DNA from: Callorhinchus milii
Taxonomy: Eukaryota
NCBI RefSeq assembly: GCF_018977255.1
Contig: NW_024704751.1
Coordinates: 4,216,001-4,280,000, forward strand
Length of the DNA: 64,000 nucleotides
Reading direction: 5' to 3'
The notes below the pieces were generated by a model. It ran no database searches. It saw only the letters and a list, made by a program, of their open reading frames with translations, and was not told the DNA's origin. Below are positions 25,059-49,252 of this stretch, one piece after another. How positions within the stretch are numbered: position 1 is the stretch's first letter; every line of letters begins with the position of its first letter. The translations under genes and the position numbers were made by a program.

Positions 25059-28000
25059 TTAGTACGGCTTCTTCTGTTGAAAAGAGAATAAATAATACAT
25101 GGAGCATTATTTTGAGTTTCTGTTCAGAAAGAAATCATATTGAAACGTCTCACCGTCTCGTCTGCGGGTAATTACCTCTGAGTAAAGTGACTGTTGCGTG
25201 GGCAAGCTTAAATAAATAACATAATAATCCCTGATAATAAAAATCCTAAAAGTAATCTGAAACACAACTGAAACCGTTTCACAGGCACAGGTTTGGACCT
25301 GTTTTAACGTCTCATCCATAGCACAGACAATGAGACACTCCCACCAGCGCTGCACCGGAGTAACAGCCAAGATTACATTTCACCACGAGAATGGTTGGGG
25401 AAGACACTGTTCCGGGTTGTTTGGGATTCCACCAATGATCCATCACTGTGATTACAGACACGTGTGAGCGATAAGCGCTTACTGACCTACACAAGTATCA
25501 CGAGATAGGTGAGTAAAGTGAAAAAGGGCTTTCGTTTTTACCTTGTTTCTTTCCCAGCCTGCGAAGGAAAAAGATAAAGAGAATCGTCAAAAGTTCATAT
25601 CAGCGCAATTGCGTCCTGCGGTAAGTGGAAGGTCACGATGCACTGTCCTGGTACTGGTACACCTTACCGGCACAGACACGATGGGCCGAATGGCCTCCTT
25701 CTGTGCTGTATAATTCTATGACTCTATGATCTTTTCATTCACGGCGCGGTGCAGGTGAAGTTGCTTTAGCCGGCCGTGATCCTTAGTGGGACGCTGTCTC
25801 CAAGTCATTTGCTGCAACATATGTATTCGAGTTTGTGGCTAGGAACTTTTAAGGTAAGTTTTTTCCCATCCAAATAAAACGGTGGTTAAGTCTGGAAGTT
25901 TCCATATTTTCGAGAAATTGCCTATTTCCTCTCGTTCTGGACGTGCAACAAAACAGCTGCTGTAGTAAATGGCGGAAAACTGAGTTGATGCTAAGCCTTC
26001 AAAACAGGCCACAACACGGCGAGTCCAGATCAAGGCTAATTATCAATGTGAAACCATAGAAATTTACAGCACAGAACAGCGACCATTTGACCCAGTGATG
26101 ATTCTCTGTAAGATCTACCTGTTCAGTCCAATTCTCATGCCTTTCCCACATCCTTTCATGTTTCTCTTTTGCAGGTGCTTATCTAAGTCCCTCTTTAAAG
26201 CTACCAGTGATTCACCTGAAACCTCACAACCTAACCACTCTTTGTGTTAAAAAATATCCTTCTAACCTCTCCCTTTCCTCTTTTCACCTAAATCTCTGGC
26301 TTCCGATTCACCGACCAGGGGAAATAATTTCTCCCTGTTTATTTCATCCCAATCTTGCTCCAATCTTATCTATGTGCCGATCGATACTCACTTTTGCTCA
26401 AGTAGCACAACAGGCCGATGAGGACAGCTAAGAGGACGATGACGCAGAACCCGATGAGAAAAACTGCTAAGCCTGGAGGTTGAGCTGTAACGTTTAATGG
26501 CAAATTGTCAACAACGGCGAATTAAGATAAATGTTTTCCAAATGCAAGGCTTATTATTCACTTTAATAACTGCACGCTTTTAAAATGGGATGTACGCAAT
26601 AAGAATATCAATAATAACCCTCGCTTTTCATGCGTCAAAGTGCTTCGCAGGATTTACTCTAAAGTGCAGTGACTGGGTAATACGTAGGTGACCAATCATC
26701 TGAACGAGACCATTTAAATCGCAATCGTTCTCTGGGGGTTATTTCTGCTCCATTCACCTTTAATGAGAACTACTCATGAAATGGACATTAAAAGAAGTGG
26801 AAAACTTTCTGCCATGTGAATAGCTGCCAGGAGCGGAAACACTGGGCTGATTTTCTACACCACATCCCAAACGGAGCTGAAGCCAACTGTAGTCGAACAA
26901 TGTGTAACTGGGCTCTCCTGCCTGTGTGACTTGTGCTGCACCTGGAGGTGCCTTTATTCACTGCAGAGTAAGAGGATCTTCCCACAAGATTTTCAGCGTC
27001 CCGTGAGGGGGAGGGGGGAAGGGGACATTAATGTTTCAAATAAAATTTCGTCACCTCCAATAATGCTGCAGTGACTGCAGTGTCTGCGTGGATTACCGGT
27101 GCGGCACTTATACTAATCCTTATGCTCGGGATAACATCCTTCGTCCCAGAGCGCTTCGCACAGGACAGACCGTAAAGTGCAGTGACCGCAGTGCCGGAAC
27201 CCGTGCGTTTTGTGGGCAATTTGAGCTCCGCAGCCGTGGAGTCAAAGGCTCGGGTTTTGAGATTTGAGATTCGATCAAACTATTGATCGAAAAAAAATAG
27301 CATCAACACTCCCTCCGCTTCCTGAGCCTGGAGCTGTTTATTATACATTTCTAATGACTCACAAACTTCACCTCTCTATTTCACCATCCCACCACACCAC
27401 ACTCCACCCCACCCCACCCCACCACACCCACCCCACCACACCCCACTCCATCCCACCCCACCCCAACATACCCCATCATATCCACCCAGCCATATCCCAC
27501 CACAACATACCACACCCCACCTGTGCCGGTTGCTTACGTTTCACTTTGACGGAGACCGAGCGTTTGATGGTTTTCGTGAGGCTGAGGTGGTCGACGCGAC
27601 ACGTGTACAGAGCCCCGCTGTCCTTGAGCGACGCACGGAACCTCAGGAAGCTGGTCAGGTTGAAGGTGCCGTCCGCGTTCCTCTTGTGGGGCGAGAAGAC
27701 CACGTTGTCCAGGTAATCGGGCAGCGTGCGTTGCCCTTCCCACTGCCGCAGCCACCTCACAGACACATCCAGAGGGTAGTAACGGGCCATCTCGCACGTC
27801 AGCTTCTGCTCCTCACCGGCCATCAGCTCGAGCGGCTCGGTGTTCATCTGCACGATGGGCGACTCTGCCGGGAAACCGTTGAGAGGGTTCGTTTTTATTT
27901 TGTAAGGTTTATTTTCTAACCGCTACTCCAAAATGAACCTTACGTTTGACAGGCCATCGATTGACTCGCCCGCTACGTGTTTTTCGTGTTGGTGACTAAT

Positions 28001-31000
28001 ACTCCGTGTTTTCGAACACCCCCTACACCCTCCACCCTCCTGATCCCAGCCACCAGTTTGGGTGTGGATCCTGACTGTCTAGCGCCTTGGGACGTCCTTT
28101 TGACGTGGAATGCGATGTGTAAGTGTAACTTGTTGTTGTTGTAGGTAGGCAAGAGCCAACTCTTAAATTGTTTTAAGGCAGGTTATCTTACCCATGATCT
28201 CCAAGAGGACGATGCTCATGCCGAAGAGCGGGGGGACGTAGACGGAGCAGATGTAGGTGCCCTCGTCTTTGACGGCCAAGTTCTGGATGCGGATCGAAGC
28301 GTTCCCGTTCCTGATCTGCTCCTCGAAGGCCACGACCCCCTTCTCCAGGTGCTCGACCTGGCGGTGTCGCCCGTTGTAGGAGAACAGCTTTGTCTTCTTT
28401 CTCTCGTGCTCGTGCCGCCATTCTATGATGACGTCGGCGTTGTGGTCAATATTGTAGCTGCAGTCCAGCACCACGTCTTGCTTGAGCTTGGCTCGGATCA
28501 ACGGGGTGCTTGTGCGGACAATGTAGACCACTGGCGGGTTCAAAAAAAGAGCAATGGGCGTCTTCCAACGTAAGTGGGATTGAAAACATTCTCGCTGCTT
28601 CATCGTGGGGCTCAGATATAATAATAATAATCCTTGCATTTGATACAGAACCTTATCACGTCTTCGAGACGTCTCAAAGCGCTTCACAGAATGTACTGCA
28701 AAGCGAATTGACTGTATATTTTGTGGGCCAAACGCGGCAGCCGATTGCGCACAGCCGCGTCCCCACAAACAGTCGTGGATTGAAGTGAACAAATTATTAT
28801 TTTCTTATGATATACTTTTTTTTCAAAAATATACAATTACTTCTCTTAAACTCATCGCCACGCATCGGCGTCTCGTAGCATTGCGGTCAGCGCACTCGCC
28901 TCGCAAGATAAATTTGTGGAGTCCTGTAGCTCAGTGGTTGAGCACTCGCTTTGCAAGCTAGAGACCTGAGTTCAATTCCAGGCAGAGGGCGAAACCTTGG
29001 GCAAGTTTCCTTACTCCACACAGAGCCTAATAATAATCCCTCCAAAACCAAAACAATAATAAATTGGTCATTTTCAATCCATGACTGTTTGTGGGACATT
29101 GCTGTGCGCAATTGGCTGCCGCGTTCGCCCACAAATATACAGTCAATTCACTTTACAGTGTGTTCTGTGAAGCGCTTTGGGACGTCCTCCCGACGTGAAA
29201 AGCGCTATATCAAATGCAAGGATTATTATTATTATTATAGAGGACCCTGGTTCGATCCCCGGGCAGAGCAAAACCTTAGGTAAGTTTCCTTACTCCACAC
29301 GCCTCTGTTTGCCTAGCGGTAAGTAGGAACCAGGTTGTTAGTTGACTGGCAGATCGCATTTCTGGGGCTAATAATCCCTTTTAAAAAAAGTATTTAAAAA
29401 ATAATAATAATTGGTCACTCAATCCACTGCTGTTTGTGTGACACTGCTGCGCGCAATTGGCTGCCGCGTTTCACCCACACAATACGCAGTGAATCTCTAC
29501 TTTACCGTGTGTTTTGTGAAGCGCTTTGAAACGTCTCAAAGGCGTGATGAGGCGCTATACCGCCTCTTTGACCGTGCCTTCAGCTCCCCTCTCGACTCTC
29601 TTCCCCCTCCTCGCTCCCTCCCTTCCCTCCCCTCACCCTGACCATTTCCCCCCTCCTCGCTCCCTCCCTTCCCTCCCCTCACCATTTCCCCCCTCCTCGC
29701 TCCCTCCCTTCCCTCCCCTCACCCTGACCATTTCCCCCCTGCTCGGGTCATGACCCAACTGTGCAGCGCCTTGGGACGTCCTCCTGACGTGAAAGGCGCT
29801 TTATAAATGGAATCTTGTTGTTGTTGTTGTATATCAAACGCAAGGATTATTATTATCATGTCAACAACCACACCACCCCGACACCCCCCACCCACCCCCT
29901 CCGCGCGCACAAACAAATCACACATCCCTCTTGCGAGCTCCTTAGCTGCTTGTGAACATTACCTTTAACCAGCAGCGTGTCTGTGTCACCAATTGTTGAA
30001 TTCTCATCGTCCTCTTTCGTTCCATGATCAGCTGCCTGTTGGCTGTCTGGTGCTGGCACCTTCCTCAAGAAGCTGGTGGTGGTGAACTTGTCTTCGGTGT
30101 GTTTTATGGTCACTGTGAACCAGCGATTGAGTAGATCTCTATCGAGCTCCTTATCCTGCTCAGGCCACGGCACGTGAATGCCGTGAGTCGAATATCGTTT
30201 GATTTCGCAGTCCAGCTTGCTGGCTTCTCCTTCCACGTACCGGAATATGTCTAGCAAGGACTCTGCAAACACAAGGCAAAGATCCACCCGCTTATTGGAT
30301 CGACATAAGACAACCCGGATTCGCAAGGCACGGAGAGTGAGGAGGGTTCTGGACAGAACAATCTGCAGCCAAAAGCAGCCGTTTGCTGCTTTTAGTTATT
30401 ATCCCTGGAAAACGGATCGCTTTATTAAGCGGATCGCTTTCCAGGGTTAATAATGCCTCGAAAAAAAATCGGTTACTCAATCCACAACTGTTTGTGGGAC
30501 GCTGCTGTGCGCAATTGGCTGCCGTGTTTCGCCCACAAGATAGTCAATCCACTTTATATTATATTCTGTGAAGCGCTTTGAGACGTCTCTCAATGACGTG
30601 ATAATTTCATAATTATAAATTATAAAATTATAAATTATAAAACCATATCAAATGCAAGGATTATTATTAGTGTTGCAATGGGCAAGGCTTGGATTTATTA
30701 TAATAACTCGATAATATAATCATTCGATATAAACATCTTATCACGTCATCAAAGTACCTCAAAGCCCTTACTGTTAAGTGTAGTGACTCTATTTGTAGAC
30801 AAACAGTACATGTGGTTAAATACAGCGCACCAGAGGTCCTTAGGACATATTTTTTTTTAACAGAGAATATTAGTGGAGCGTGTATTTAATCCGCTGGCCG
30901 TACCTTTAACATTGAAGGTGATGGCTTTTTCTTGCTGTAAATCCTCTGCCCCCATATCGCCAAACACCAGGAAGGCCTTCCTCCGGATGATTTGTGGGGC

Positions 31001-31695
31001 AAACATAGTTCTGTCGTTGGAACTCTCTTCCATAAAGGTGCAGTCCCACTTCTCTGCCGTCCATTATGAGCACGTGCAGATCCTAAACACGGAGGAGATG
31101 CGGAGTCTTGAACAAGGCCCGAGTCAGACCACGTCCACTGGCGCGCTCATCAATAACACAACGACATATTGCCGAACACCAAACACCGAGTATATTAACA
31201 ACAATAATCCTTGCATTTGATATAGCGCCTTATCACGTCGTTCAGGCGTCTCAAAGCGTTCCGCGGAGTATTCTGTGAAGCGCTTTGAGACATCTTGAAG
31301 ACGTGATAAGGCGTTACATCAAATGCAAGGATTATTATTATATTGTACAGTGGACTGACTGCATTTTGCGGGCGAAAGCAATGTTGGATTGCTCATCTGC
31401 TATTTTTTTGGAGGGTGACCCGAGGTCCCGCCTGCCTGTTTGGGCAGGTGTTGAAGATCCCATCGTGGTAAGCGAAAAGAGGAAAGAGGAAGTAAGTTTC
31501 TCCCAGAGTCCAGGCCAACAATCCCCCGAAACAATATTGCTCATTCACTTCAGGGCTGTTTGTGGGATATTGCTGTGTGCAAACTGACTGTTGTGTTTAC
31601 CTCCCGATAGCCAGTGACCAGACTTTACAGTAAAAGCACTTTAAGATGTTTTGACAATCAGTTGTAACAACTGACAATCCTATTACCAAATGCAT

Positions 31696-31728
<33 letters not shown>

Positions 31729-32044
31729 GTGTACACTTTAATAGGGTGCATTATTGTTTGTCATCTCCTGCTCTAGTCAACTGGATTTCTTTTATATTAA
31801 AAAAAAAGAGCTGAATGCATATCAAAATCCACATTCACTTTTATTCTTGGGTGATTAAAAAAAAAGTTTGATGGGAAGCAGTTTCGTTTGTGAATTCGGA
31901 GTTGCTTGAGGCCAGCCAGCTTCAACACACAAGGATCAAAGGACAAGCTACACAAAAACAAAAACCCCAAAGGCATTGAGACTTCTGTTAGCCCTTACCT
32001 GAGCACAGGATCCACAGGTGCAGGAGCAAGGTGGCAAGAATCAT
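25059..32044 (-). CDS. TAPBPL: Tapasin-family protein of the third (TAPBPL / tapasin-like) lineage: signal peptide, N-domain, IgV, IgC1, TM, KKPY tail
   Basis: Exons 32044-31999 (MILATLLLHLWILCS), 31082 or 31053-30904 (WDCTFMEE...ITFNVK), 30262-29963 (LDCEIKRYSTHGIHVPWP...RWFTVTIKH), 28530-28192 (IgV: LDCSY..W..DEGTYICSV), 27864-27538 (IgC1: LTCEMARYYP..YTCRVDHLSL), 26484-26392 (TM), 25558-25542 (17 nt), 25073-25059 (KKPY*). Phase-1 introns separate the domains. The symbol refers to the non-mammalian TAPBPL lineage, not human TAPBPL/TAPBPR. Confidence 0.88.
26055..26350 (-). mobile_element. Degenerate CR1 3' fragment
   Basis: A catagaaatttacagcacagaa...ccatttgacc tail in reverse. Similar tails lie at about 5355-5420 (-), 13225-13370 (+) and 25670-25730 (+). 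Confidence 0.55.
27380..27520. repeat. (ccacaccc)-type low-complexity tract
   Basis: Degenerate C/A-rich repeats next to the IgC1 exon donor. Confidence 0.8.
28918..29238 (+). mobile_element. Young short SINE nested in the head of an older long SINE
   Basis: Same consensus as above. The older element's head is at about 28875-28908 and its remainder at about 29239-29560. Confidence 0.9.
29590..29740. repeat. Pyrimidine-rich tandem repeat of about 40-46 bp, three or more copies
   Basis: ccccctcctcgctccctcccttccctcccctcacc(ctgacc)attt repeated. Confidence 0.85.
30310..30670 (+). mobile_element. Long-form SINE (older, degenerate)
   Basis: Head, central segment, core and tail are recognisable. 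It sits in an intron of the tapasin-like gene. Confidence 0.7.
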
Positions 32045-32108: not shown

Positions 32109-32180
32109 GCTTTCAGTTTCAGGAAGTTTCTGTTTTATTAATTCGGCCTGCAGAGAGAGATAGAGAGAAACGAAACCAAT
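32109..32180 (-). promoter_or_regulatory. IRF-E/ISRE-like motifs and CCAAT box upstream of the tapasin-like ATG
   Basis: GAAACTGAAAGC on the minus strand at 32120-32109; GAAACGAAACC on the plus strand at 32167-32177, overlapping CCAAT at 32176-32180. These lie 65-135 nt upstream of the ATG at 32044. Confidence 0.5.
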
Positions 32181-32499
32181 TGTGCAACCAGACAGACATC
32201 CTACTCTGGGTGTGTGGGTGGGTAACGTTGAGTGGGGATCTTGACCTCAAAACTCATCTCAATAGTGAGCAGGGTGGGATTGAGTCAAGGAAAAACCTCC
32301 TTTATAAAATTATTAAATGATAAAAAATTATTAAATTATTATAAATTATAAAAATTATTAAAAAACTGCCTTTTATCACCACTCACTGACTGCATGAGGT
32401 TTTCTGGGACCTTTGGAATGCGCAGTTGGCAGAGAAGGTATTGGACTGAATAAGCAAAGAATGACTGTGCCAGTGCGAGTTCTACCTAAGTTAACTTTA

Positions 32500-32826
32500 A
32501 TAATAATAATAATAATAATCCTCGCATTTGATATAGCGCTTTTCACGTCGGGAGGACGTCCCAAAGCGCTTCACAGAACACACTGTAAAGTGAATTGACT
32601 GTATATTTGTGGGCGAACGCGGCAGCCAATTGCGCACAGCAATGTCCCACAAACAGTCGTAGATTGAAAACGATCAATTTATTATTGTTTTTGGTTTTTG
32701 GAGGGATTATTATTAGGCTCTGTGTGGAGTAAGGAAACTTGCCCAAGGTTTCGCCCTCTGCCTGGAATTAAACTCAGGTCTCTCACTTGCAAAGCGAGTG
32801 CTCTAACCATTGAGCTACAGGACTCC
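32500..32826 (-). mobile_element. Young short SINE, full length
   Basis: Same consensus, reverse orientation, upstream of the tapasin-like promoter. Confidence 0.9.
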
Positions 32827-34822
32827 ACTCCACTTTAACTTCAAGACGTTAACTTTGCGACATCTAAGAAGGCGTGAAAAGCACCATATCAAAGGCAAGG
32901 ATTATTTATTATAACCTGGCAGAGAATTCAAGGGTTGGCATTTTGGAAGGATTGAGATCGACCGGACTGAAGAGCTTAATAATAATAAAATAATAATACT
33001 AATCCTTGCGTTTGATGTAGCGCCTTATCACGTCTTCAAGACGTCTCAAAGCGCTTCACGGGATGTACTGTGAAGTGAATTGACGGTATATTTTGTGGGC
33101 AAAACACAGCAGCCAATTGCGCACAAGGTGTCCCACGAACAACTGTGGATTGAGTGACCAATTTATTATTATTATTAAAGTTGTTGTTGGTGTTGTTGAG
33201 CCAGCTTTCTTTATCTGAACCGATCTTTTGAACCAGCCAACGGATTAGATATTTGCCAATGTCAAGTGTCAGTGGCTTCAGGGCATTGCAGTCTATAACA
33301 AGGCATTTGTTGGTCCACCAGAATTTCGCTTGCACTAAAAATACTGACTGATACCTCCCAATGTGAAAGGCGCTATACAAATGTAAATTTGTAATGTATT
33401 TTTCTTGGAAAATGACTCAGCACTCAGCCCATCAATAATTCCTTCAAAAAAAATAATTTGGTCACTCAATCCACGACTGTTTGTGGGACACTGCTGTGTG
33501 TAATTGGCTGCTGCATTTCAGTTCAGTCTGTCTGCAATATTACAAAAGTGCAGAACTTTGCAATAAGATCTCAAAGGGTCCTTATTGACACATCAAACGA
33601 CTTTGCGTGTGTGTTTTTAAAATACTTTTGTGAACGGGAGTCTGCGCTTCAAATGAGCACTCACTTTGTACCTAAATCACAAGAGAACACAAGTTTTATT
33701 TATTGAAAATAAATATAAAACACATCGACATTTTCCTTTAAAATGACATTAAAATAATTTTAACATAATACATCAAAGAAAGGTAGTGTATAGAGTGGTT
33801 AAAATTGTTTCACATGGATTAATGTTAACTTTATTAAAAAAATTGCTCAATGCTTTAAAAATAGAAAAGGTTTTTTTTTACTAATAGATGCTTCCGGGGG
33901 AAATTCCACCTGTGTCTAGATTCACTGCATTGCGTCTTAGGCGGTCCAGAATTTGGCGAATTATTGAATATTCGGTCTCAACTTTGAAGTTTTTTTTTTG
34001 GGGGGAATTCTTTTAAAAAAACTTACAGAAAACCAGTTTCAAAATTAAGGCTGTATTGCCAGATTCTGGATGCTCTGAAATGCTACATTAAAAAGCAAAT
34101 CTAGACCAGGATGGATTTTCTCTCCACTTTATTGTTTATTCCAGCAGGTGACCACCTTTCAAACCTATTCTAAAGACACAGGATAGTAGACCCACAACTC
34201 AAATGTCCCTTCCCCTGTGAGTCAGCTGGGATTGGAAAATTAGCAGAACGCAGGATATTGTACTCTGGTTCCTCAGTGCCATAGAATTAAGCGCTAGTGC
34301 CCAATGTGAATACATACATAGCACTACTACTTTGACTGGAAGGACCTTTTAAACATTCTTCTAAAACACATTCCACATACATTCAACTGAAAATTGACGT
34401 AGATTTTGCAATATGTCCAATTAAAGCATACAAGGATTGACGCTGTAGCTCAGTAATTCCATTCAATCCAATATTCCCATGTTGAGATGTCCATTAATTG
34501 TCCTGTATGGGATATAAAACTCAGTTTGCCTTCAAGTATACATTCACTACATTTCACTGCGAAAGCCTGCAAAGTGGTTTGCGATGTCTCAACGACGTTA
34601 TAAGGTGCTGCATTAATTATTATTATTATTATTGCATTGTGAAGTAGTGATCAAACTTGTAGTTTATCGTAATGCCTGCAACTTAAAAAATAATTCTGAT
34701 GAAGTCTGTTTAGGCAATAAAAAGAGCTTCTCTCAACTTAAAACCGCTCTTCTGAGAATTTCCAGTAGCTTTAATCAAGATTAGACTTTCTTGCAAGGAG
34801 AAACTATAGAAGAAACGCATGT

Positions 34823-37800
34823 TTAATGTAACTTAGGTCTGCCTCTGCTTTGAATTGCTTTATATTTTTGTGTTAATTCTTCGGCTTTTCTCTGCCTCCA
34901 GTCGCAGATGTCAACAAAGTCACACGAGCAGCACTTCCACGCCTCTTCGATATCCACCCCCTCGGCTTCCCTCTGCCCCTTCCAGAAGGAGAAGCAATTC
35001 GCCAGTTCTCTTCGCAGCCATTCCTCCTGGAAGCACACCGCCTCCGCTCCAATGGCAGATCTATCGGCCTGGTAACAGTATTCTATCATCAGAGTGTCGA
35101 TCTGGGGAATCTCCGAGTAGGTTAGATTCAACAACACCAAATCCAGTAGGTCACCAAACGTGTGCACAGTGAATCCCATCTTCTCAGCGTGCTCAGAAAC
35201 CTCTGAGCCAAAGGGTTGCTCGGTCCGTAAGCGGAGATGGCGAAGGAGAATGCCCTTGTCCACCTCACCTCGGATCATGGCCTCGAACAGGCATTTGTAC
35301 ACTCTGACCTGATAACGACAAGCATTCGGTGTCACTTGACAATAAACATTCAGTTAAAGTGTTAAAGTGATAGGTTTACTCCACCAAATTCGGCAATGTC
35401 TGCTTTCTATTCATTCCACTTGCTGGTGGGAGGTGGGGCTGGCCAGCAATTGTTCTACAAGGGCTTCGAAGCAAAAAGAAATGAACACAAATCCACCTCG
35501 CTAGCCTGAAGACTACAATGCTGGCTCCTAACCAGACAGAATGAAGGGTCAGGCACCAGAGCTGCCTGTCAATCATTGGTTAGGCCGGACATTTACACAC
35601 AAAAAACTCAGTTACTCAACTGGGGTAATAATCCCTTCAAAAAAAAATGATGATAATAATTTGGCCACTCATTTCACGACTGTTTGTGTGACGCTGCTGC
35701 CCGCAATGGCCTGCCGTGTTTCGTCCACAAAATTATGTGGAGTCCTGTAGCTCAGTGGTTAGAGCACTCGCTTTCCAAGCGAGAGACCTGAGTTCAATTC
35801 CAGGCAGAGGGCGAAACCTTGGGCAAGTTTCCTTACTCCACACAGAGCCTAATAATAATCCCTCCAAAACCAAAAACAATAATAAATTGGTCATTTTCAA
35901 TCTACGACTGTTTGTGGGACATTGCTGTGCGCAATTGGCTGCCGCGTTCGCCCACAAATACACAGTCAATTCACTTTACAGTGTGTTCTGTGAAGCGCTT
36001 TGGGACGTCCTCCCGACGTGAAAAGCGCTATATCAAGTGCAAGGATTATTATTATATACAGTCACTACACTTACAGTCAATACACTACAGTGTATTCTGT
36101 GAAGCGCTTTGAGACATTTCAATGACGTGATAAGGCGCTATATCAAATCCAAAGATTGCCTATTATATTATAACACAACATAAATCAAATACTACTGAGA
36201 AAAATACTACTAAAATACTGTGAAGCAGTGACCGCTATAATAAAAATGATAATAACAAAGATCCGGCAAGGTCATAAACGAATTAATCGGGAGGAACATT
36301 GGCTAGGAGGTGGGGAGGGGAAAATTCCCTTCTCTTTTCAAACAGTGTAAAAGAATCCTTAACATCCAGCTGAACAGATGTCATCGTCCCCTACTACTGC
36401 ACTAGTATCAGTCTAGGCTGTGATGCCAAGTCCCGATTTAGGACTTGAACGCATAACATTTTGATCCAGAGGCAAGAATGGTAGCAATTGAGCCAAACTG
36501 ATTGATACCTAAACGAGACTACCAATTTAGTGCTCCATATGAATAACCTTTGGTACTGCGCCCACGGAGTTTCCAATCTTATGCATTCTCTTCTACCCAC
36601 CCTCTTACCTGTAAGTGATGGCTTTTCCTCTGGGCTGCACCTGGGAATGATCGCTGGCTGCGTGTTTTGAATTCACACAGCTCAAGTTCGCCCTTGGAAT
36701 TATAACGCAGCTCATCGATTATACCAACCAGAAACAAGCCATCCAGCTCTCCAAATACAGGCATCTCCCGCACAATCCCCCCTAAACAGACAGACACATT
36801 ACAACATTAGAATACCACGGACAGCTCAACGACATTTATAATATTAAAGGCGTAACAAATGGGCTGTTTTATAACTTTTTTTCCCCCATGACTTAGTACC
36901 CAAAGGCCAAATGTAAAGGAGACATGGAATCGCGATGCTGTCATTGTTCCTTGGCTGAGGTCAGCGAATGGAGAAGATTCCAAGGATTGATCCTGGAACT
37001 TTATTAGTCCATAAATTATTTTAATAATCTTAAAAACTACGACTTGCATTTACATAGTGCCCTTCACACAAGGTAACATCTCAGAGTGCTTTACAAGTTG
37101 GGACGTTGAGCAAGGCAGGGGTGGTCATAGGCACATCCAAAGAGGATTTGAGATGGAACTTAAGACAGAAAGGGCGGCAAGACGGAGGGATAGAGGGAGA
37201 GAGTTCCAGAGGTTAAGGGTTTGGGAACTGAACTTGGTCACTGAAGGTACTGAGGAAAGGGCAAAGGACCTGCAACAAGCCTGAGTTAGCTGAGAAGAGG
37301 GGCCAAGTGGAGGAGTAAGGTAGGAGAAGGTCGGAGCTAAGTAGAGTGTTGACAAAATGCATAATATTGCACTTATTACATGTAAACTGTAGAGTTTTGA
37401 AGAAAACCAAATTCCTGTTCTGCACATGCCATTACATACCCGTCTGTAGGACTTGAATCGCTGAGAGAAGATTAAGAAGTTTAATGGCCCAACTATCTTC
37501 CCGGCTTGTTACATTTACTGCCACAATGTCATGGACCTCCAACTCTGCAATGCATCAAATCAGACATAAATTAAGACATCCTTCAGATAAACCCTTCGCT
37601 AGAGAGCTTTGATAAAGTGTCACACTAACCAACGTGCATGCAAACCAAACTAGATCAACATGGGAGATCCATTCCTTTAGGCAGATTGTTCGAAGTCTGA
37701 AAAAGATCTTCTTTGAGAAATGGCAGTTCAGCTCCAGCATTATTCAACAATGCGGCTTTATTGCATCATAAAACAAAATACATTGGGATGGGGAAAGGGA

Positions 37801-40692
37801 AATCACTCTATAAAAACATTGAAGCTAATCGTGTGCAACTAGGAATTGAATTGCATACTAAGCAAGCTACTGGAAAATTCTTCTTCGATGATTGGAAAAT
37901 TTTTGTTTTGTCCTTTCTGAGGAGTACCTACACAACAGGCAGACACCATCAAGAACAAGTCCTAGCTTGATCTAGTGGCAGTTATTTTTAATAACAAATC
38001 TCATTACAAATTGTTGCATGTCAAGCCTCACTGACAAATTAATCGCTGCATCACCTCTTGCCAGGTGTAGGCTGCTCCCCGCTTTCACAATTGGCAGCTC
38101 AGCTCGCAGCTTCTCAATCTGCGGCATTTCCATCCCATAAACCACTTGCTGCTCACACCACACCTGTCTACTTAAGTGAGTCACACTCAAGTAAGTTAGG
38201 CCAAACTTCTCCATTGGTGTCCGTTTGTCCTGCTTTTGTCTTTTAGCGACTGTGCAGTCAGGGTTTGGGCCACTTGCCTCTCCGGGCTCAGGTGACAGAT
38301 TGATGGATTGATGTTCATCCTTCCTATGATGAAGAGTATCCCACAGTTAACTCTTCGAGTACTGAAGCATGCAAAGAATTCCAAAAACATTCAGAGGTGA
38401 AAATTCATAAAAGACTAACACTGGTCATCACCATCGGGTCTCCTTCTACAGAAAGTGTCTCAGATGAGCACAGTAAATGCACCACATGATGCAGCAAAGA
38501 ACCATACAGATCTGAAAGATCCTGGGCCTGACCTCTTTTAGATACTGTCTTCTGAAAACTACTAATTTCACATACTTTCTTCTGCTTTCATATCTTCAGC
38601 CAGTATTCTTACTCCAAACTATTATGCAATGACCTGCTGCTGGCAGTGTGAATTTACCCCTTAGATGAGGACAGGGTGTATAGGCTCAGCTTTAACACCT
38701 CCCAGCCCATATCAGTTAACCCCTCTCTCAATCAAACAGCCTATCAACACTACCGTCTGCACTCACATGGCAAATTGTCACTTAGATGAGAAGCTCAAGA
38801 CTTCCCAGGACCACTGCACATTCCAACATATTGCTGATTTCCCAAAGAAATCCAAAGGTTACCATTATCCGGAAAGATAAGACAAAGTTCAAAAAAGTTA
38901 AAATAAAGTTCAAGAAACAAGTTTTTCCCCACCCCGTTATTTCATATTGATTTGTGTGAGGGCATCAGAAAAAAAATGAATATATAATAGGAATTCAACC
39001 TCACAGCATAAGCAAATATTAAGATCAGCAATTGTGCATTTTACATAAATCATTTTATATGGAGTTTCAATTCAACGACTGTATTTCCAAATGAGTTCAA
39101 AACACAGCAACACCCACTATTGACTAAGAACTTACTGTTTATTTGAATACAACTGAGTTTTCCTTCATATTTTAGTAAACAAAATTGATTCCCTTATAGG
39201 TAGTGAAAGCATGCATTAGTTTCTCATTCCTACCTGGCATTAAACAAATTTAACTCGATCCATATTTAATTATTTAATGTCAAAAGTCAGCCAATCCCTC
39301 CGTGCATTACAAGGTGGAGGTCAGATACACTCAGCAGCGGCTCAGCTACCTGCTTGTCAGTGCAGCTGTCTCTTGGTTGCTACAGCAAGGCTCAGACTTG
39401 ACTGGTGTGCGATCATTGTCTTCATCACTCGGTTCAGGTTTTCCTGAGAATTTAGGAAATACAGACTTCATACATTTTTCTAAAAAACAGGTTGCATGGT
39501 GAATTCTAACATAACTGACTTTCAAATCTAAACTATATTTCTATAACTAGATGAGATCTAACATGAAAAGAATAAAGTGCTGTATGTCCTTAATAATCTT
39601 ATGACATTTGGATTTTAAACAGTTAAGAGCAACGCCAAACGATCCAGTAATGCTCCCGTACTCCAGACCAGGTTGGGAGACGCTATCCTGTATGAAAGGC
39701 GCTATATAAATGCAAGGCGTTGTCAGTTTGCATCCCAGTCTGCACTGATTTAGCTGATCTTAAATGCAATTTTATTGTTGTTGTTCTTGTTGTCTCAGGT
39801 GCGGGAGGCAGCGTAATTGGCCATCGCAATTGGGTTCACTGATTTGGGTGGAGGTGAGGAGTTTGTAGGAAATAAATCAGATCTCCCAATTCCTATCCAG
39901 TGACGCTTCCCCTCCTCGGCAGATATACCAACACACACACCATTTGGTGGGTATTTATTTGTATGTGCAAATAAACAGAATTTTACGCGTAGGACAACTT
40001 TTTATGTGCAGGTTGGGGAGGGGGGAGAGGAGGGGTTGGGAGGGGGGAGAGGGATTGGGAGGGGAGAGAGGAGGGGTTGGGGAGGGGGGAGAGGAGGGGT
40101 TGGGAGGGGAGAGAGGAGGGATTGGGAGGGGAGAGAGGAGGGGTTGGGGAGGGGGGAGAGGAGGGGTTGGGAGGGGAGAGAGGAGGGATTGGGAGGGGAG
40201 AGAGGAGGGGTTGGGGAGGGGGGAGAGGAGGGGTTAGGAGGGGGGAGAGGAGGGGTTGGGAGGGGAGAGAGGAGGGGTTGGGAGGGGAGAGAGGAGAGAG
40301 GGCTTGGGGAGGGGAGAGAGGAGGGGTTGGGGAGGGGGGAGAGGAGGGCTTGGGGAGGGGGGAGAGGAGGGCTTGGGGAGGGGGAGAGGAGGGCTTGGGG
40401 AGGGGGGAGAGGAGGGGTTGGGAGGGGAGGGGAGAGAGGAGGGGTTGGGGAGGAGAGAAAGGTTTTTTTTCGCTGAACTGTGCATTATTATTATTAATAT
40501 GCATTTGACGCAGCGCCTTATTGATCACGTCGCTGAGACGCCTCGAAGCGCTGACTCAAGACAGTTGCCCAGACCTCCGTCAGTCTGCGGTTGGGTGTGA
40601 CAGCCCCGGGGCTTCGGGCCGCACAGCTGCTCCAAATCCAGCTCCAGGAGCTCAGCGTCGCTGATCTCAAACACATCCGGCTGTCCGGTCAT
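34823..40692 (-). CDS. EXO5: Exonuclease V (DEM1 family), copy 1, six coding exons, about 414 aa
   Basis: Exons 40692-40575, 39443-39350, 38323-38055, 37544-37440, 36781-36609, 35308-34823 total 1245 nt and are phase-consistent. Motifs: [80 protein letters not shown] (the 4Fe-4S cysteines and RecB-like catalytic residues). The exon-1 donor (GAG|GTCTGG) is the least certain boundary. Confidence 0.92.
35739..36055 (+). mobile_element. Young short SINE nested in an older SINE (EXO5 copy 1, last intron)
   Basis: The older SINE core at about 35530-35738 resumes at about 36056-36160. Confidence 0.9.
37035..37350 (-). mobile_element. L2 LINE 3' end (duplicated at about 44434-44750)
   Basis: Minus-strand [12 protein letters not shown] motif plus the tail gcactatgtaaatgcaagtcgtag. 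Confidence 0.75.
40010..40460. repeat. G-rich VNTR, unit about 19-21 bp (ggggagagaggaggggttgg); shorter counterpart at about 47405-47625
   Basis: Direct tandem repeats, about 450 bp here versus about 220 bp in copy 2. Confidence 0.9.
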
Positions 40693-40699
40693 GGCCGTG

Positions 40700-40830
40700 G
40701 CCTGGGGTCTGAGCCTGGGGCCTGGGACCTGAGCCTGGGGGCCTGAGCCTGGGACCTGAGCCTGGGGCTCTGAGCCTGGGGGCCTGAGCCTGGGGCTCTG
40801 AGCCTGGGGGCCTGAGGGCCTGAGGCCTCG
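40700..40830. repeat. GC-rich VNTR, unit 12-14 bp (ctgagcctgggg), just upstream of the EXO5 ATG; longer counterpart at about 47870-48060
   Basis: Direct tandem repeats with different length in the two copies. Confidence 0.9.
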
Positions 40831-41329
40831 GGTTCGCCTCCGGAGCGCGGATCCAGCAGCTCCTCTCAGTCCGGCTGTAATAAGCGTCCCCCACCACAGC
40901 CGAGGTGCCGCACATTCGTTCCGGGTTGAAAAGTTCCCCCCCCACCGACCGACGTGTCTCTGTCTCTCACTCACTGTTACCCCCTCCATCACCACCCGGA
41001 GGAATCCGACGCTTTTCTGTTCAGACGGTGACGTGTTATATTCTCTCTCTCTTTCTCTCCGCGGCCCCAAGTAATTTTTTTCCCCCCCAAAAAAATCATC
41101 AACGAGAACAAAGAGTTAACAACCACAAAAATATTTCTTTTAATGAAATGACGAAATAAAAATTATTAAAATTAAAGAAAATTCATCGAATAACCGTGTT
41201 AAATGATTGTATCGAATAAATAAACAAACAAACAAACACAAATACTGATTAACACTAAATAGATAATTGTTAATAGCCGTTATTGTGTGTAAATGTATAT
41301 TATTAAAAAGCGAACTTTTTGGGGGAAAA

Positions 41330-41719
41330 AAAGGCGGCGCGTGGATCGGCACAACCCGCCGATCACGGTTCGGCGACTGAGAGGAACTTTTTTTTTAATT
41401 TAATTTTTTTTAAAAAAAAACAAGGAACCGGGAGCAGTGGTTGTTCTTCACGGTGATAGAGAGATCGCGACCGGTTTACGGTGTCAAAACGATTTTTTTA
41501 TTTCTTTCTTGTGGTGAAAAAAAATAGTAAAAGGTGGCGGCGTGAACTACTTTGTCCAGGCGGAGGCGGACCCACCGACCGGGAGGGCGGTTTGGCGGTG
41601 TCGCCATGGCAACGTGGCCGCGGGAAGGAGGCGGAGAGAAGGCGCGACTCGCTGCTCCTGTGAGGAATTCACACACAACACAACACACAACTGTGTGAGG
41701 GGGAGAGGAACCCAATACA
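41330..41719. promoter_or_regulatory. CpG-rich promoter region with RFX X-box (copy 1)
   Basis: CpG-dense, with GTCGCCATGGCAAC at 41600-41613, upstream of EXO5 (minus strand). Confidence 0.6.
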
Positions 41720-42014
41720 NNNNNNNNNNNNNNNNNNNNNNNNNNNNNNNNNNNNNNNNNNNNNNNNNNNNNNNNNNNNNNNNNNNNNNNNNNNNNNNNN
41801 NNNNNNNNNNNNNNNNNNNNNNNNNNNNNNNNNNNNNNNNNNNNNNNNNNNNNNNNNNNNNNNNNNNNNNNNNNNNNNNNNNNNNNNNNNNNNNNNNNNN
41901 NNNNNNNNNNNNNNNNNNNNNNNNNNNNNNNNNNNNNNNNNNNNNNNNNNNNNNNNNNNNNNNNNNNNNNNNNNNNNNNNNNNNNNNNNNNNNNNNNNNN
42001 NNNNNNNNNNNNNN
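41720..42014. other. Assembly gap (295 N)
   Basis: Run of N. Confidence 1.
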
Positions 42015-42237
42015 ATAATTGCATAATAATAATGCAATTATTATTATTGCATTGTGAAGTAGTGATCAAACGTGTAGTTTATCGTAATGCCTGCAACTTA
42101 AAAAATAATTCTGATGAAGTCTGTTTAGGCAATAAAAAGAGCTTCTCTCAACTTAAAACCGCTCTTCTGAGAATTTCCAGTAGCTTTAATCAAGATTAGA
42201 CTTTCTTGCAAGGAGAAACTATAGAAGAAACGCATGT

Positions 42238-45200
42238 TTAATGTAACTTAGGTCTGCCTCTGCTTTGAATTGCTTTATATTTTTGTGTTAATTCTTCGGC
42301 TTTTCTCTGCCTCCAGTCGCAGATGTCAACAAAGTCACACGAGCAGCACTTCCACGCCTCTTCGATATCCACCCCCTCGGCTTCCCTCTGCCCCTTCCAG
42401 AAGGAGAAGCAATTCGCCAGTTCTCTTCGCAGCCACTCCTCCTGGAAGCACACCGCCTCCGCTCCAATGGCAGATCTATCGGCCTGGTAACAGTATTCTA
42501 TCATCAGAGTGTCGATCTGGGGAATCTCCGAGTAGGTTAGATTCAACAACACCAAATCCAGTAGGTCACCAAACGTGTGCACAGTGAATCCCATCTTCTC
42601 AGCGTGCTCAGAAACCTCTGAGCCAAAGGGTTGCTCGGTCCGTAAGCGGAGATGGCGAAGGAGAATGCCCTTGTCCACCTCACCTCGGATCATGGCCTCG
42701 AACAGGCATTTGTACACTCTGACCTGATAACGACAAGCATTCGGTGTCACTTGACAATAAACATACAGTTAAAGTGTTAAAGTGATAGGTTTACTCCACC
42801 AAATTCGGCAATGTCTGCTTTCTACTCATTCCACTTGCTGGTGGGAGGTGGGGCTGGCCAGCAATTGTTCTTCAAGGGCTTCGAAGCAAAAAGAAATGAA
42901 CACAAATCCACCTCGCTAGCCTGAAGACTACAATGCTGGCTCCTAACCAGACAGAATGGAGGGTCAGGCACCAGAGCTGCCTGTCAATCATTTGTTAGGC
43001 CGGACATTTACACACAAAAAACTCAGTTACTCAACTGGGGTAATAATCCCTTCAAAAAAAAATGATAATAATTTGACCACTCATTTCACGACTGTTTGTG
43101 GGACGCGCTGCCCGCAATGGCCTGCCGTGTTTCGTCCACAAAATTATGTCAGGTCCTGTAGCTCAGTGGTTAGAGCACTCGCTTTGCAAGCGAGAGACCT
43201 GAGTTCAATTCCAGGCAGGTCAGGGCGAAACCTTGGGCAAGTTTCCTTACTCCACAAAGAGCCTAATAATAATCCCTCCAAAACCAAAAACAATAATAAA
43301 TTGATCATTTTCAATCTACGACTGTTTGTGGGACATTGGCTGCCGCGTTCGCCCACAAATATACAGTCAATTCATTTTACAGTGTTTTCGGTGAAGCGCT
43401 TTGGGACGTCCTCCCGACGTGAAAAGCGCTATATCAAGTGCAAGGATTATTATTATTATATACAGTCACTACACTTACAGTCAATACACTACAGTGTATT
43501 CTGTGAAGAGCTTTGAGACATTTCAATGACGTGATAAGGCGCTATATCAAATGCAAGGATTGCCTATTATATTATAACATAAATCAAATACTACTGAGAA
43601 AAATACTACTAAAATACTGTGAAGCAGTGACCGCTATAATAAAAATGATAATAACAAAGATCCGGCAAGGTCATAAACGAATTAATCGGGAGGAACATTG
43701 GCTAGGAGGTGGGGAGGGGAAAATTCCCTTCTCTTTTCAAACAGTATAAAAGAATCCTTAACATCCAGCTGAACAGATGTCATCGTCCCCTCCTACTGCA
43801 CTAGTGTCAGTCTAGGCTGTGATGCCAAGTCCCGATTTAGGACTTGAACGCATAACATTTTGATCCAGAGGCAAGAATGGTAGCAATTGAGCGAAACTGA
43901 TTGATACCTAAACGAGACTACCAATTTAGTGCTCCATATGAATAACCTTTGGTACTGCGCCCACGGAGTTTCCAATCTTATGCATTCTCTTCTACCCACC
44001 CTCTTACCTGTAAGTGATGGCTTTTCCTCTGGGCTGCACCTGGGAATGATCGCTGGCTGCGTGTTTTGAATTCACACAGCTCAAGTTCGCCCTTGGAATT
44101 ATAACGCAGCTCATCGATTATACCAACCAGAAACAAGCCATCCAGCTCTCCAAATACAGGCATCTCCCGCACAATCCCCCCTAAACAGACAGACACATTA
44201 CAACATTAGAATACCACGGACAGCTCAACGACATTTATAATATTAAAGGCGTAACAAATGGGCTGTTTTATAACTTTTTTTCCCCCATGAGTTAGTACCC
44301 AAAGGCCAAATGTAAAGGAGACATGGAATCGCGATGCTGTCATTGTTCCTTGGCTGAGGTCAGCGAATGGAGAAGATTCCAAGGATTGATCCTGGAACTT
44401 TATTAGTCCATAAATTATTTTAATAATCTTAAAAACTACGACTTGCATTTACATAGTGCCCTTCACACAAGGTAACATCTCAGAGTGCTTTACAAGTTGG
44501 GACGTTGAGCAAGGCAGGGGTGGTCATAGGCACATCCAAAGAGGATTTGAGATGGAACTTAAGACAGAAAGGGCGGCAAGACGGAGGGATAGAGGGAGAG
44601 AGTTCCAGAGGTTAAGGGTTTGGGAACTGAACTTGGTCACTGAAGGTACTGAGGAAAGGGCAAAGGACCTGCAACAAGCCTGAGTTAGCTGAGAAGAGGG
44701 GCCAAGTGGAGGAGTAAGGTAGGAGAAGGTCGGAGCTAAGTAGAGTGTTGACAAAATGCATAATATTGCACTTATTACATGTAAACTGTAGAGTTTTGAA
44801 GAAAACCAAATTCCTGTTCTGCACATGCCATTACATACCCGTCTGTAGGACTTGAATCGCTGAGAGAAGATTAAGAAGTTTAATGGCCCAACTATCTTCC
44901 CGGCTTGTTACATTTACTGCCACAATGTCATGGACCTCCAACTCTGCAATGCATCAAATCAGACATAAATTAAGACATCCTTCAGATAAACCCTTCGCTA
45001 GAGAGCTTTGATAAAGTGTCACACTAACCAACGTGCATGCAAACCAAACTAGATCAACATGGGAGATCCATTCCTTTAGGCAGATTGTTCGAAGTCTGAA
45101 AAAGATCTTCTTTGAGAAATGGCAGTTCAGCTCCAGCATTATTCAACAATGCGGCTTTATTGCATCATAAAACAAAATACATTGGGATGGGGAAAGGGAA

Positions 45201-47860: not shown

Positions 47861-48967
47861 GGCCGTGGCCTGGGGTCTGAGCCTGAGGCCTGAGCCTGGG
47901 CGCCTGAGCCTGGGGCCTGAGCCTGGAGGCCTGAGCCTGGGGCCTGAGCCTGGAGGCCTGAGCCTGGGGCTCTGAGCCTGGGGGCCTGAGCCTGGGGCTC
48001 TGAGCCTGGGGGCCTGAGCCTGGGGCTCTGAGCCTGGGGGCCTGAGGGCCTGAGGCCTCGGGTTCGCCTCCGGAGCGCGGATCCAGCAGCTCCTCTCAGT
48101 CCGGCTGTAATAAGCGTCCCCCACCACAGCCGAGGTGCCGCACATTCGTTCCGGGTTGAAAAGTTCCCCCCCCACCGACCGACGTGTCTCTGTCTCTCAC
48201 TCACTGTTACTCCCTCCATCACCACCCGGAGGAATCCGACGCTTTTCTGTTCAGACGGTGACGTGTTATATTCTCTCTCTCTTTCTCTCCGCGGCCCCAA
48301 GTAATTTTTTTCCCCCCCAAAAAAATCATCAACGAGAACAAAGAGTTAACAACCACAAAAATATTTATTTTAAATTAAAAAATAAAACGAAATGACGAAA
48401 TAAAAATTATTAAAATTGAAGAAAATTCATCGAATAACCGTGTTAAATGATTGTATCGAATAAATAAACAAACAAACAAACAAACACAAATACTGATTAA
48501 CACTAAATAGATAATTGTTAATAGCCGTTATTGTGTGTAAATGTATATTATTAAAAAGCGAACTTTTTGGGGGAAAAAAAGGCGGCGCGTGGATCGGCAC
48601 AACCCGCCGATCACGGTTCGGCGACTGAGAGGAACTTTTTTTTTAATTTAATTTTTTTTAAAAAAAAACAAGGAACCGGGAGCAGTGGTTGTTCTTCACG
48701 GTGATAGAGAGATCGCGACCGGTTTACGGTGTCAAAACGATTTTTTTATTTCTTTCTTGTGGTGAAAAAAAATAGTAAAAGGTGGCGGCGTGAACTACTT
48801 TGTCCAGGCGGAGGCGGACCCACCGACCGGGAGGGCGGTTTGGCGGTGTCGCCATGGCAACGTGGCCGCGGGAAGGAGGCGGAGAGAAGGCGCGACTCGC
48901 TGCTCCTGTGAGGAATTCACACACAACACAACACACAACTGTGTGAGGGGGAGAGGAACCCAATACA

Positions 48968-49252
48968 NNNNNNNNNNNNNNNNNNNNNNNNNNNNNNNNN
49001 NNNNNNNNNNNNNNNNNNNNNNNNNNNNNNNNNNNNNNNNNNNNNNNNNNNNNNNNNNNNNNNNNNNNNNNNNNNNNNNNNNNNNNNNNNNNNNNNNNNN
49101 NNNNNNNNNNNNNNNNNNNNNNNNNNNNNNNNNNNNNNNNNNNNNNNNNNNNNNNNNNNNNNNNNNNNNNNNNNNNNNNNNNNNNNNNNNNNNNNNNNNN
49201 NNNNNNNNNNNNNNNNNNNNNNNNNNNNNNNNNNNNNNNNNNNNNNNNNNNN
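48968..49252. other. Assembly gap (285 N)
   Basis: Run of N. Confidence 1.

Follow-up and report, generated by a model that had tools for sequence, protein, structure and literature searches.

We examined which lineage of the tapasin family is represented by a gene of the elephant fish, Callorhinchus milii, found within a 64-kb stretch of genomic DNA (the window, i.e., the whole of the DNA analysed), and what the product of this gene might do. Tapasin (TAPBP), which is MHC-linked, is the bridge within the peptide-loading complex and TAPBPR is a TAP-independent class I editor; to our knowledge these two proteins are the sole known catalysts of MHC class I peptide selection. The HGNC symbol TAPBPL refers to TAPBPR, not to the third lineage of Grimholt, for which the name is used herein. 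Grimholt 2018 (PMC5824609) gave the name TAPBPL to a third tapasin lineage, as published covering bony vertebrates (teleosts, gar, frog, turtle, birds, marsupials), of which the gar, turtle, bird and salmon sequences end K-x-K-P-Y. The literature that was searched yielded no paper assigning cartilaginous fish to this lineage, and no binding, localisation or editing experiment on any TAPBPL.

The predicted gene lies on the minus strand between the ATG at 32044 and the end of the stop codon at 25059, and is drawn with 8 exons, GT-AG at every intron of the 8-exon model, phase 0 at the last intron and phase 1 at all earlier junctions. The gene is real: an earlier note on this DNA had placed it at 25059-32044, exactly the span from ATG to stop, and the strings quoted in that note are all present in the sequence where it placed them. 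The predicted product is a 428-aa type I membrane protein, in which a signal peptide is followed by a tapasin-type N domain, then IgV and IgC1, a TM helix without charged residues and lastly a tail ending NKKKPY. Exon 1 (31999..32044; this and all the exons below are on the minus strand) includes the start codon and the signal peptide (MILATLLLHLWILCS), is modelled by AF2 as a helix over residues 2-20, and ends in phase 1 at the donor gtaagg. The N domain is split between exon 2 (30904..31053), with the first conserved Cys (KWDCTFMEE...), and exon 3 (29963..30262), with the second (LDCEIK). Exon 4 (28192..28530) encodes the IgV domain, with an EWRxx strand at the TN6-patch position, an NGNAS glycosylation site and GTYIC; exon 5 (27538..27864) encodes IgC1, with the S-x-H-[K/R]-x-N-x-D-G-T loop at the TC2/TC3-patch position.

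Pfam detected a V-set domain in exon 4 (E 1.6e-14) and a C1-set domain in exon 5 (E 5.4e-12), and the IgV exon aligned across the full domain to the TAPBPR chains 5opi_C and 5wer_C (E ~1e-7). Exons 2 and 3 searched alone against PDB and Pfam gave no meaningful match, so the case for a tapasin-type N domain is built on the fold model plus the alignment of the full-length protein. The AF2 model of TAPBPL had a pLDDT of 85.8; when it was compared with the PDB by Foldseek, the best 16 matches were all tapasin or TAPBPR (370-450 columns, E 1e-20 to 1e-26), with the tapasin entries 3f8u, 7qng and 7tue among the top. The model thus predicts the full tapasin fold, with an N-terminal barrel fused to IgV and IgC1 after it, the N domain being some 20 residues shorter than those of TAPBP and TAPBPR.

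Lineage was assessed with an unrooted maximum-likelihood tree (LG+C20) of 56 sequences. TAPBP, TAPBPR and a third clade were each supported 100/100, and branching inside each of the three agreed with the species tree; because the tree is unrooted, it does not give which two lineages are sisters. The window protein was placed in the third clade, as sister to C. milii P0184 (with which it shares an identical C-terminus) and within a chondrichthyan subclade supported 100/99. The third clade was equated with the published TAPBPL through its taxa, names and shared tail, and spans cartilaginous fishes at one end and marsupials and platypus at the other. Judged from sequence, the locus is almost certainly the elephant-fish orthologue of TAPBPL sensu Grimholt 2018, the third ancient tapasin paralogue. 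Fold match and phylogeny thus agree with the tapasin-family membership claimed by the earlier note, and the tree, by setting the protein outside both TAPBP and TAPBPR, bears out its assignment to a third lineage. The same note was inexact in counting two mammalian members, since marsupials and platypus retain the third, and it overstated novelty: the gene was already annotated, and both the missing TM lysine and the ER signal of the lineage were already noted in 2018 (Grimholt). The window protein and the C. milii entry UniProt A0A4W3I7M7 ("tapasin-related protein-like") are essentially identical: they differ at two aligned residues and, where exons 1 and 2 meet, over a stretch of 10 residues.

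The gene probably lies outside the MHC, as the earlier note had it: no MHC, TAP or class I genes were found within the 64-kb window around TAPBPL. Upstream, on the same strand, is EXO5 (34622..48762, minus strand; Pfam Exo5 matches), which occurs in two nearly identical ~7.3-kb blocks around gaps in the assembly, with direct repeats that are 98-100% identical; downstream and convergent is an exon of a RAP1GAP-like gene (4713..5045, plus strand; Pfam Rap_GAP E 5.8e-19), which matches human RAP1GAP (1srq/3brw) at E 1e-24. EXO5 is also upstream of TAPBPL in the sawfish Pristis, and a Rap-GAP gene has the same position relative to TAPBPL in the bird Numenius; the order EXO5-TAPBPL-RapGAP is common to elephant fish, a sawfish and a bird.

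An ISRE/IRF-E core (GAAACTGAAA; 32111..32120, minus strand) is found in the sense direction, 76 bp before the ATG. In all four species compared (elephant fish, sawfish, teleost, bird), a GAAANNGAAA core precedes the ATG by 36-76 bp, with just 2-5 sense matches to it per locus in 24-64 kb. The evidence is weaker for an inverted IRF-type element (TTTCGTTTC; 32167..32175, minus strand) ~125-130 bp upstream of the ATG, a similar one being found at -93 in the Denticeps orthologue. A candidate GAS element at TTCCTGAA, just upstream of the ISRE, was rejected for wrong GAS spacing. In salmon, IFN-gamma raises the expression of TAPBPL genes by log2 1.5-3 (PMC7573153). RNA runs contained 0.56-0.66 of the words sampled from a stretch that is 0.67 exon, and a spliced TAPBPL mRNA contig exists in a related chimaera; compared with that relative, dN/dS was 0.47 overall and 0.27 in IgC.

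What such a protein might do is suggested by the positions at which MHC class I is contacted (patch positions taken from PMC6307860). At the TN6 positions, chondrichthyan TAPBPL has E/D in 12/12 sequences, R in 12/12 and Q in 10/12, and essentially every third-clade member retains the H and the basic residue of the IgC loop. The Q272-equivalent is not retained in chondrichthyan TAPBPL, and the elephant-fish protein is unlike other sharks at two patch positions (E at both the Q209- and the K211-equivalent). The E-W-R patch is kept in sharks and ray-finned fishes and largely lost in tetrapod TAPBPL, and the lineage may for this reason have changed its client or its mode of binding.

We propose that TAPBPL would be made in response to interferon/IRF signals; that COPI would keep it in the ER or bring it back there by means of the dilysine tail; and that the E-W-R patch on the IgV face, together with the S-x-H-[K/R] loop of IgC, would grip a peptide-receptive heavy chain, class I or class I-like, together with beta2-microglobulin, just as these parts do in tapasin and TAPBPR. 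It would not be docked on TAP, for want of an intramembrane basic residue, and would form no covalent conjugate with ERp57, for want of a free luminal cysteine. On this analysis the chances are about even that TAPBPL acts on class I as an ER-retrieved chaperone or editor independent of TAP; to the explanation taken whole (TAPBPL identity plus a class I chaperone mechanism) we assign a probability of roughly 0.8.

The alternative that TAPBPL is itself a member of the peptide-loading complex, in cartilaginous fish bridging class I to TAP or ERp57 through contacts different from the Cys95 and TM lysine of mammals, was weighed on the TM helix, the tail and the cysteines. The TM helix (GLAVFLIGFCVIVLLAVLIGLLCYL) in exon 6 (26392..26484; AF2 helix 403-432 in P0184 numbering) has no charged residue, as the earlier note had seen. 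The K or R by which tapasin binds TAP within the membrane occurs in the TM helix of 14/15 TAPBP sequences and in the TM core of no third-clade member; an acidic S-I-E-D motif preceding the helix, conserved in TAPBP from sharks to turtles, is likewise absent throughout the third clade. Both absences speak against a loading-complex role, as does the lack of TAP or class I genes beside TAPBPL in the window. A tail of the ER-retrieval type, by contrast, is common to tapasin and TAPBPL and speaks for such a role, as does the interferon link that TAPBPL shares with loading-complex genes. The tail ...SWERNK/KKPY is assembled by splicing of the two small final exons, a 17-nt cytoplasmic exon 7 (25542..25558; SWERNK) and exon 8 (25059..25073; KKPY and stop codon), which completes K-K-K-P-Y. 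The dilysine signal proposed in the earlier note is therefore present in the window, and it is conserved in the lineage: K-[K/R/P]-K-P-Y ends 22/26 third-clade members in the set, with K at -3 and -5 and PY at -2/-1 kept from chimaera to marsupial. TAPBP tails keep K-x-K-x-x or K-K-x-x, and TAPBPR has neither.

The segment between the conserved tryptophans in exon 3 (VPWPEQDKELDRDLLNRWF) contains no Cys, as the earlier note observed; the note was mistaken in taking the missing Cys95, in human tapasin the free cysteine for the disulfide with ERp57, for a mark of exclusion from the loading complex, since a Cys between the two tryptophans was found in 0/15 non-mammalian TAPBP sequences, elephant-fish tapasin included. 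The absence of Cys95 from non-mammalian tapasins was also noted by Grimholt 2018 (PMC5824609). It was accordingly rejected as evidence of ERp57 independence, and it favours the loading-complex alternative to the extent that covalent ERp57 capture is no general requirement. A better argument is that the luminal cysteines of the window protein (C20, C84, C189, C260, C302, C367) align with columns in which essentially every one of the 56 sequences has Cys and, by homology, are probably paired, one pair in the N domain and one in each Ig domain; as only these six family-wide paired cysteines are present, none would be free for a mixed disulfide. We regard loading-complex membership as improbable.

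A TAP-independent class I chaperone is also to be preferred to the view that TAPBPL keeps only the ancestral fold and works either at the surface, as an IgV-IgC ligand of B7 type, or as a chaperone whose clients are not class I. Two observations are consistent with this view: the next-best matches for the IgV-IgC part of TAPBPL were B7-H3 and B7-H6, and the tetrapod members have largely lost the E-W-R patch. The protein, however, has the N-terminal tapasin domain and is matched over its whole length only by tapasin and TAPBPR, the dilysine tail speaks against steady display at the surface, and the patch residues are retained in sharks and ray-finned fishes; we judge a B7-like or other-client role to be improbable as well.

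Whether the window copy is intact depends upon the 5' end of exon 2, which is ambiguous. A strong acceptor at 31085 is used both in the mRNA of the related chimaera and in the UniProt A0A4W3I7M7 model; in comparison with both of these the window is 1 nt shorter at ~31050, and acceptor 31085 is consequently out of frame, so that reading from it runs into a stop where exon 3 begins. An in-frame protein from this assembly requires the weaker acceptor 31053. The window copy may accordingly represent a null allele or decaying pseudogene, its frame from the normal acceptor broken by a 1-nt deletion in exon 2, and two 31-mers sampled across the indel site were in none of the runs listed, though this is weak evidence (61 bases searched, only 2 words). 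Against decay, the remaining exons are all intact with canonical splice sites, the protein otherwise has only the two residue differences from the independent C. milii model, the exons are present in RNA runs, the dN/dS is that given above, and an error of one base in a short run of purines is typical of assemblies. A disabled copy is thus quite unlikely.

The reading that the locus is instead the elephant-fish orthologue of TAPBPR (official symbol TAPBPL), i.e., of the second known lineage, draws on the naming of the clade as "tapasin-related protein(-like)" by NCBI and UniProt, on TAPBPR rather than tapasin being the top tapasin-family PDB match of the IgV exon, and on the missing TM basic residue, but it is contradicted by the tree (as is a TAPBP duplicate, and both identities were rejected), in which shark TAPBPR (Carcharodon, Cetorhinus, Scyliorhinus, Heterodontus) groups apart, with bony-vertebrate TAPBPR at 100/100, and by the dilysine tail absent from TAPBPR and the TAPBPR-wide extra Cys absent from the window protein (human C94 column; Cys in 14/14 TAPBPR sequences, Gly here), and it can hardly be correct.

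With the locus taken as TAPBPL, cartilaginous fishes have all three lineages, and the triplication therefore dates from before the jawed-vertebrate crown. A broader scenario, which we offer tentatively and which is unlikely to hold in full, would have the three paralogues predate the last common ancestor of jawed vertebrates, and TAPBPL serve as an interferon-driven, COPI-retrieved, TAP-independent editor or retrieval receptor for a subset of shark and fish class I molecules unserved by tapasin (e.g., non-classical genes outside the MHC in this genome), its binding face having changed in tetrapods before the gene was lost in placental mammals. The lineage was already named and the gene already annotated, and the result is a consolidation, not a discovery. 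It adds to the bony-vertebrate literature the occurrence of all three lineages in cartilaginous fishes, the retention of class I contact motifs in shark and fish TAPBPL, and the retention of the dilysine tail and a proximal ISRE. Apart from placental mammals, all jawed-vertebrate groups have retained this third paralogue for over 400 million years, and its contact motifs, dilysine tail and ISRE are concrete handles for experiments.

Compared with the known systems, the window TAPBPL has the fold of tapasin and, in common with it, the NG-N-A-S glycan site, an E-W-R-x-Q strand, the S-x-H-R loop of IgC, all six conserved cysteines of the luminal part and a dilysine tail of the ER-retrieval type; tapasin differs in forming a separate clade, in its N domain longer by ~20 residues, in having the TM K/R and the S-I-E-D motif, and in being MHC-linked near class I/TAP, whereas the window gene adjoins EXO5 and a RapGAP gene. 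TAPBPR (PDB 5opi, 5wer), the best tapasin-family PDB match to the IgV exon, has the same fold and an uncharged TM helix and, as is probable for the window gene too, is not MHC-linked; it differs in its separate clade, in being without a dilysine tail, and in the lineage-wide extra Cys (human C94) that Grimholt 2018 (PMC5824609) linked to UGT1 binding. The TAPBPL of Grimholt differs in a "unique cysteine 11 residues downstream", which the window protein lacks and only ray-finned fishes and a bird possess; in domain order, in the K-x-K-P-Y C-terminus, in the missing TM lysine and in clade (100/100), the two are the same.

The minus-strand gene at 32044-25059 was modeled from ORF lists and a three-frame translation of the window. 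The model has eight exons, E1 (32044-31999), E2 (31053-30904), E3 (30262-29963), E4 (28530-28192), E5 (27864-27538), E6 (26484-26392), E7 (25558-25542) and E8 (25073-25059), with GT-AG at every intron and phase 1 at all junctions up to the last, as is usual in Ig-superfamily genes; the product is 428 residues. Pfam placed a V-set domain in E4 and a C1-set domain in E5. The strings quoted in the earlier note were all found: E3 has the Cys-free W...W segment, E6 the TM helix with no charged residue, and the tail, ...SWERNK|KKPY*, is the splice product of the last two tiny exons, E7 (...SWERNK) and E8 (KKPY*).

At the 5' end of exon 2 (31045-31090, minus strand) the window lacks 1 nt relative to the mRNA of a related chimaera and to the sequence inferred from A0A4W3I7M7, the C. 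milii UniProt entry "tapasin-related protein-like". The missing base is a purine at about 31050; its absence puts the strong acceptor at 31085, to which exon 1 is spliced in the chimaera mRNA and the UniProt model, out of frame in the window, and reading from it ends at a stop codon where exon 3 begins. The shortfall is most likely an assembly indel. It may otherwise represent allelic variation or a null allele, or exon 2 of the window may use an alternative acceptor; the one at 31053 is weak and is the only one that keeps frame. The window protein and A0A4W3I7M7 differ at two aligned residues and, where exon 1 joins exon 2, over a stretch of 10 residues. A C/T difference (R to C) lies near the exon 2 discrepancy and a T/M difference lies in exon 5, assembly indel or allelic variation being the likely cause of the differences.

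The IgV exon was scanned, without a profile, against 1.8 billion representatives. Matches included many multi-Ig proteins and a set of 300-470-aa proteins aligned across the whole domain, from skate, lungfish, sturgeons, arowana, frogs, caecilian and wombat, with cluster names "tapasin-like" or "tapasin-related protein-like" and, in several, a C-terminal ...KKKPY. Three word-based searches for named full-length relatives gathered third-lineage members from about 15 cartilaginous fishes, coelacanth, teleosts and tetrapods (including marsupials, platypus, turtles and birds), and TAPBP (tapasin) sequences from sharks to turtles. An unrooted tree of 56 sequences and 457 columns (IQ-TREE, LG+C20 PMSF) gave three groups, each at 100/100: TAPBP (n=15), TAPBPR (n=14, four sharks among them), and a third of 26 sequences plus the window. 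The phylogeny that the earlier note had suggested thus confirms its observation of a third tapasin-family gene, separate from TAPBP and TAPBPR. Within the third group the expected subclades are seen for chondrichthyans (100/99), for ray-finned fishes, and for lobe-finned fishes with tetrapods, and TAPBP and TAPBPR likewise divide into the expected species subclades; all three lineages are therefore older than the split between cartilaginous and bony vertebrates. Since the tree is unrooted, it does not indicate which pair of the three are sister lineages. The third group is the "TAPBPL" of Grimholt 2018 (PMC5824609), described in teleosts, gar, frog, turtle, birds and opossum and lost in placentals; Verissimo et al. 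2023 use "tapbpl" for TAPBPR. No paper assigning cartilaginous fish to the TAPBPL lineage was found in the literature searched.

The N-domain exons had no match by sequence alone in PDB or Pfam. AlphaFold2, run on A0A4W3I7M7 with a 33-sequence clade alignment, returned a model of mean pLDDT 85.8 and pTM 0.76. In Foldseek comparison with the PDB, places 1-16 were all tapasin (among them 9rcv, 3f8u, 7qng, 7qpd, 6eny and 7tue/f/g) or TAPBPR (7rno, 5opi, 5wer), over 370-450 columns, and the next matches, B7-H6 and nectins, covered two Ig domains only; this ranking supports tapasin architecture for the N domain too. Compared with TAPBP and TAPBPR, the N domain is without a segment of about 20 residues.

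By Pfam matches, EXO5 lies upstream of TAPBPL on the same strand, and a RAP1GAP-like exon (4713-5045, plus strand; human RAP1GAP PDB chains, E 1e-24) lies downstream and convergent. The upstream same-strand neighbor in sawfish is also EXO5, and the convergent downstream neighbor in curlew is a Rap-GAP gene; the locus is therefore orthologous over >400 million years. Human EXO5 and RAP1GAP are presumably both on 1p. No MHC gene stands beside TAPBPL within the 64-kb window. The EXO5 exons lie in a pair of direct repeats (34622-41514 and 42037-48762), each about 7.3 kb long and 98-100% identical to the other, with an N gap bounding each (41720-42014 and 48968-49252), a pattern suggestive of duplication, either by assembly or in tandem in the very recent past; each block contains a long G/A-rich low-complexity tract (39870-40600 and 47260-47770) translating as GEGREG/PLLSP-type sequence. 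An interspersed repeat, probably a SINE-type element, is found on either strand within introns and between genes (about 28600-29330, 32376-32750, 2411-2777, 43100-43520 and 60085-60510); translated, its copies give peptides that resemble one another and include an oligo-I/oligo-Y run.

The sequence GAAACTGAAA is present in sense orientation 76 bp upstream of the TAPBPL ATG, the sole such match within tens of kb in the window, where IRF-type elements lie at 32111-32120 and 32167-32175 (minus strand). The same core stands at -53/-47 in sawfish, -36 in the teleost Denticeps and -76/-70 in curlew, so that chimaera, sawfish, teleost and bird have an ISRE/IRF-E core (GAAANNGAAA) 36-76 bp before the start codon (orthologue loci L004, ~9948-9965; L002, ~9965-9975; L003, ~9925-9945). 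Each relative locus has 2-5 sense matches in 24-40 kb; the product of chance values across species, roughly 1e-8, is an order-of-magnitude argument because promoters differ in composition. The conserved core fits the induction of three salmon TAPBPL genes by IFN-gamma (PMC7573153). C. milii RNA-type runs contained 0.56-0.66 of sampled words from a stretch that is 67% exon, and the related chimaera has a spliced 1.8 kb TAPBPL mRNA contig. Comparison of these two species gives dN/dS values of 0.47 (overall) and 0.27 (IgC), which indicate moderate purifying selection.

Mutation of TAPBPR at E205-Q209 (TN6), I261 (TN5), R335 (TC2) or Q336-S337 (TC3) abolishes class I binding (PMC6307860). Patch residues were counted in aligned columns for chondrichthyan, ray-finned and lobe-fin/tetrapod TAPBPL, respectively: E/D at E205 in 12/12, 5/5 and 2/10; R at R207 in 12/12, 4/5 and 2/10; Q at Q209 in 10/12, 4/5 and 4/10. 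At the positions of Q209 and K211 the elephant-fish copy carries E, which its chimaera relative does not. All third-clade members have the IgC loop H, and 26/27 the basic residue that follows it; tetrapod TAPBPL has largely lost the E-W-R of the IgV patch and kept the IgC loop and dilysine tail. From residue conservation we infer that the class I-binding face may be retained in shark and fish TAPBPL and remodeled in tetrapods.

As the gene is annotated and its lineage was published in 2018, finding it in a cartilaginous fish adds only modestly to a known lineage. New in detail are a tail that does not vary, an ISRE and a gene order that are both conserved, and a binding patch eroded in a lineage-specific manner. 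The earlier note read the protein as an ER-resident editor or chaperone independent of TAP and ERp57, perhaps for non-classical class I or other Ig-fold clients; this reading is right in part, in that its lineage, ER signal and uncharged TM stand, and its argument from the missing Cys95 does not. In tapasin, 14/15 sequences carry K or R in the TM helix, and in all 15 the helix is preceded by an acidic motif of S-I-E-D type; no third-clade member and no TAPBPR of the 56-sequence set has either feature. The uncharged TM, common to the whole lineage, supports TAP independence; its missing charge was previously noted by Grimholt 2018 (PMC5824609). Cys95 is uninformative, because the window protein and 15/15 non-mammalian TAPBP, C. 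milii tapasin included, have no Cys between the two tryptophans. Instead, some 20 residues further upstream, C. milii tapasin has an additional Cys in a column common to ray-finned-fish tapasins, and the TAPBPR-wide extra Cys (column of human C94) is missing from the window protein, whose cysteines are the six family-wide ones only, so that none is free for a mixed disulfide. Elsewhere in the third clade an extra unpaired Cys is lineage-specific, at one column in ray-finned fishes and a bird and at another in marsupials and platypus. Grimholt's supplementary TAPBPL C-termini are KKKKPY in gar, KPKPY in turtle and bird and QRKPY in salmon. In our set, members ranging from chimaera to marsupial share K -5, K -3, P -2 and Y -1. 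Dilysine signals are of KKxx and KxKxx types, to which the KKKPY, KRKPY and KPKPY variants appear to conform. The dilysine tail is also kept in TAPBP, and in no TAPBPR.
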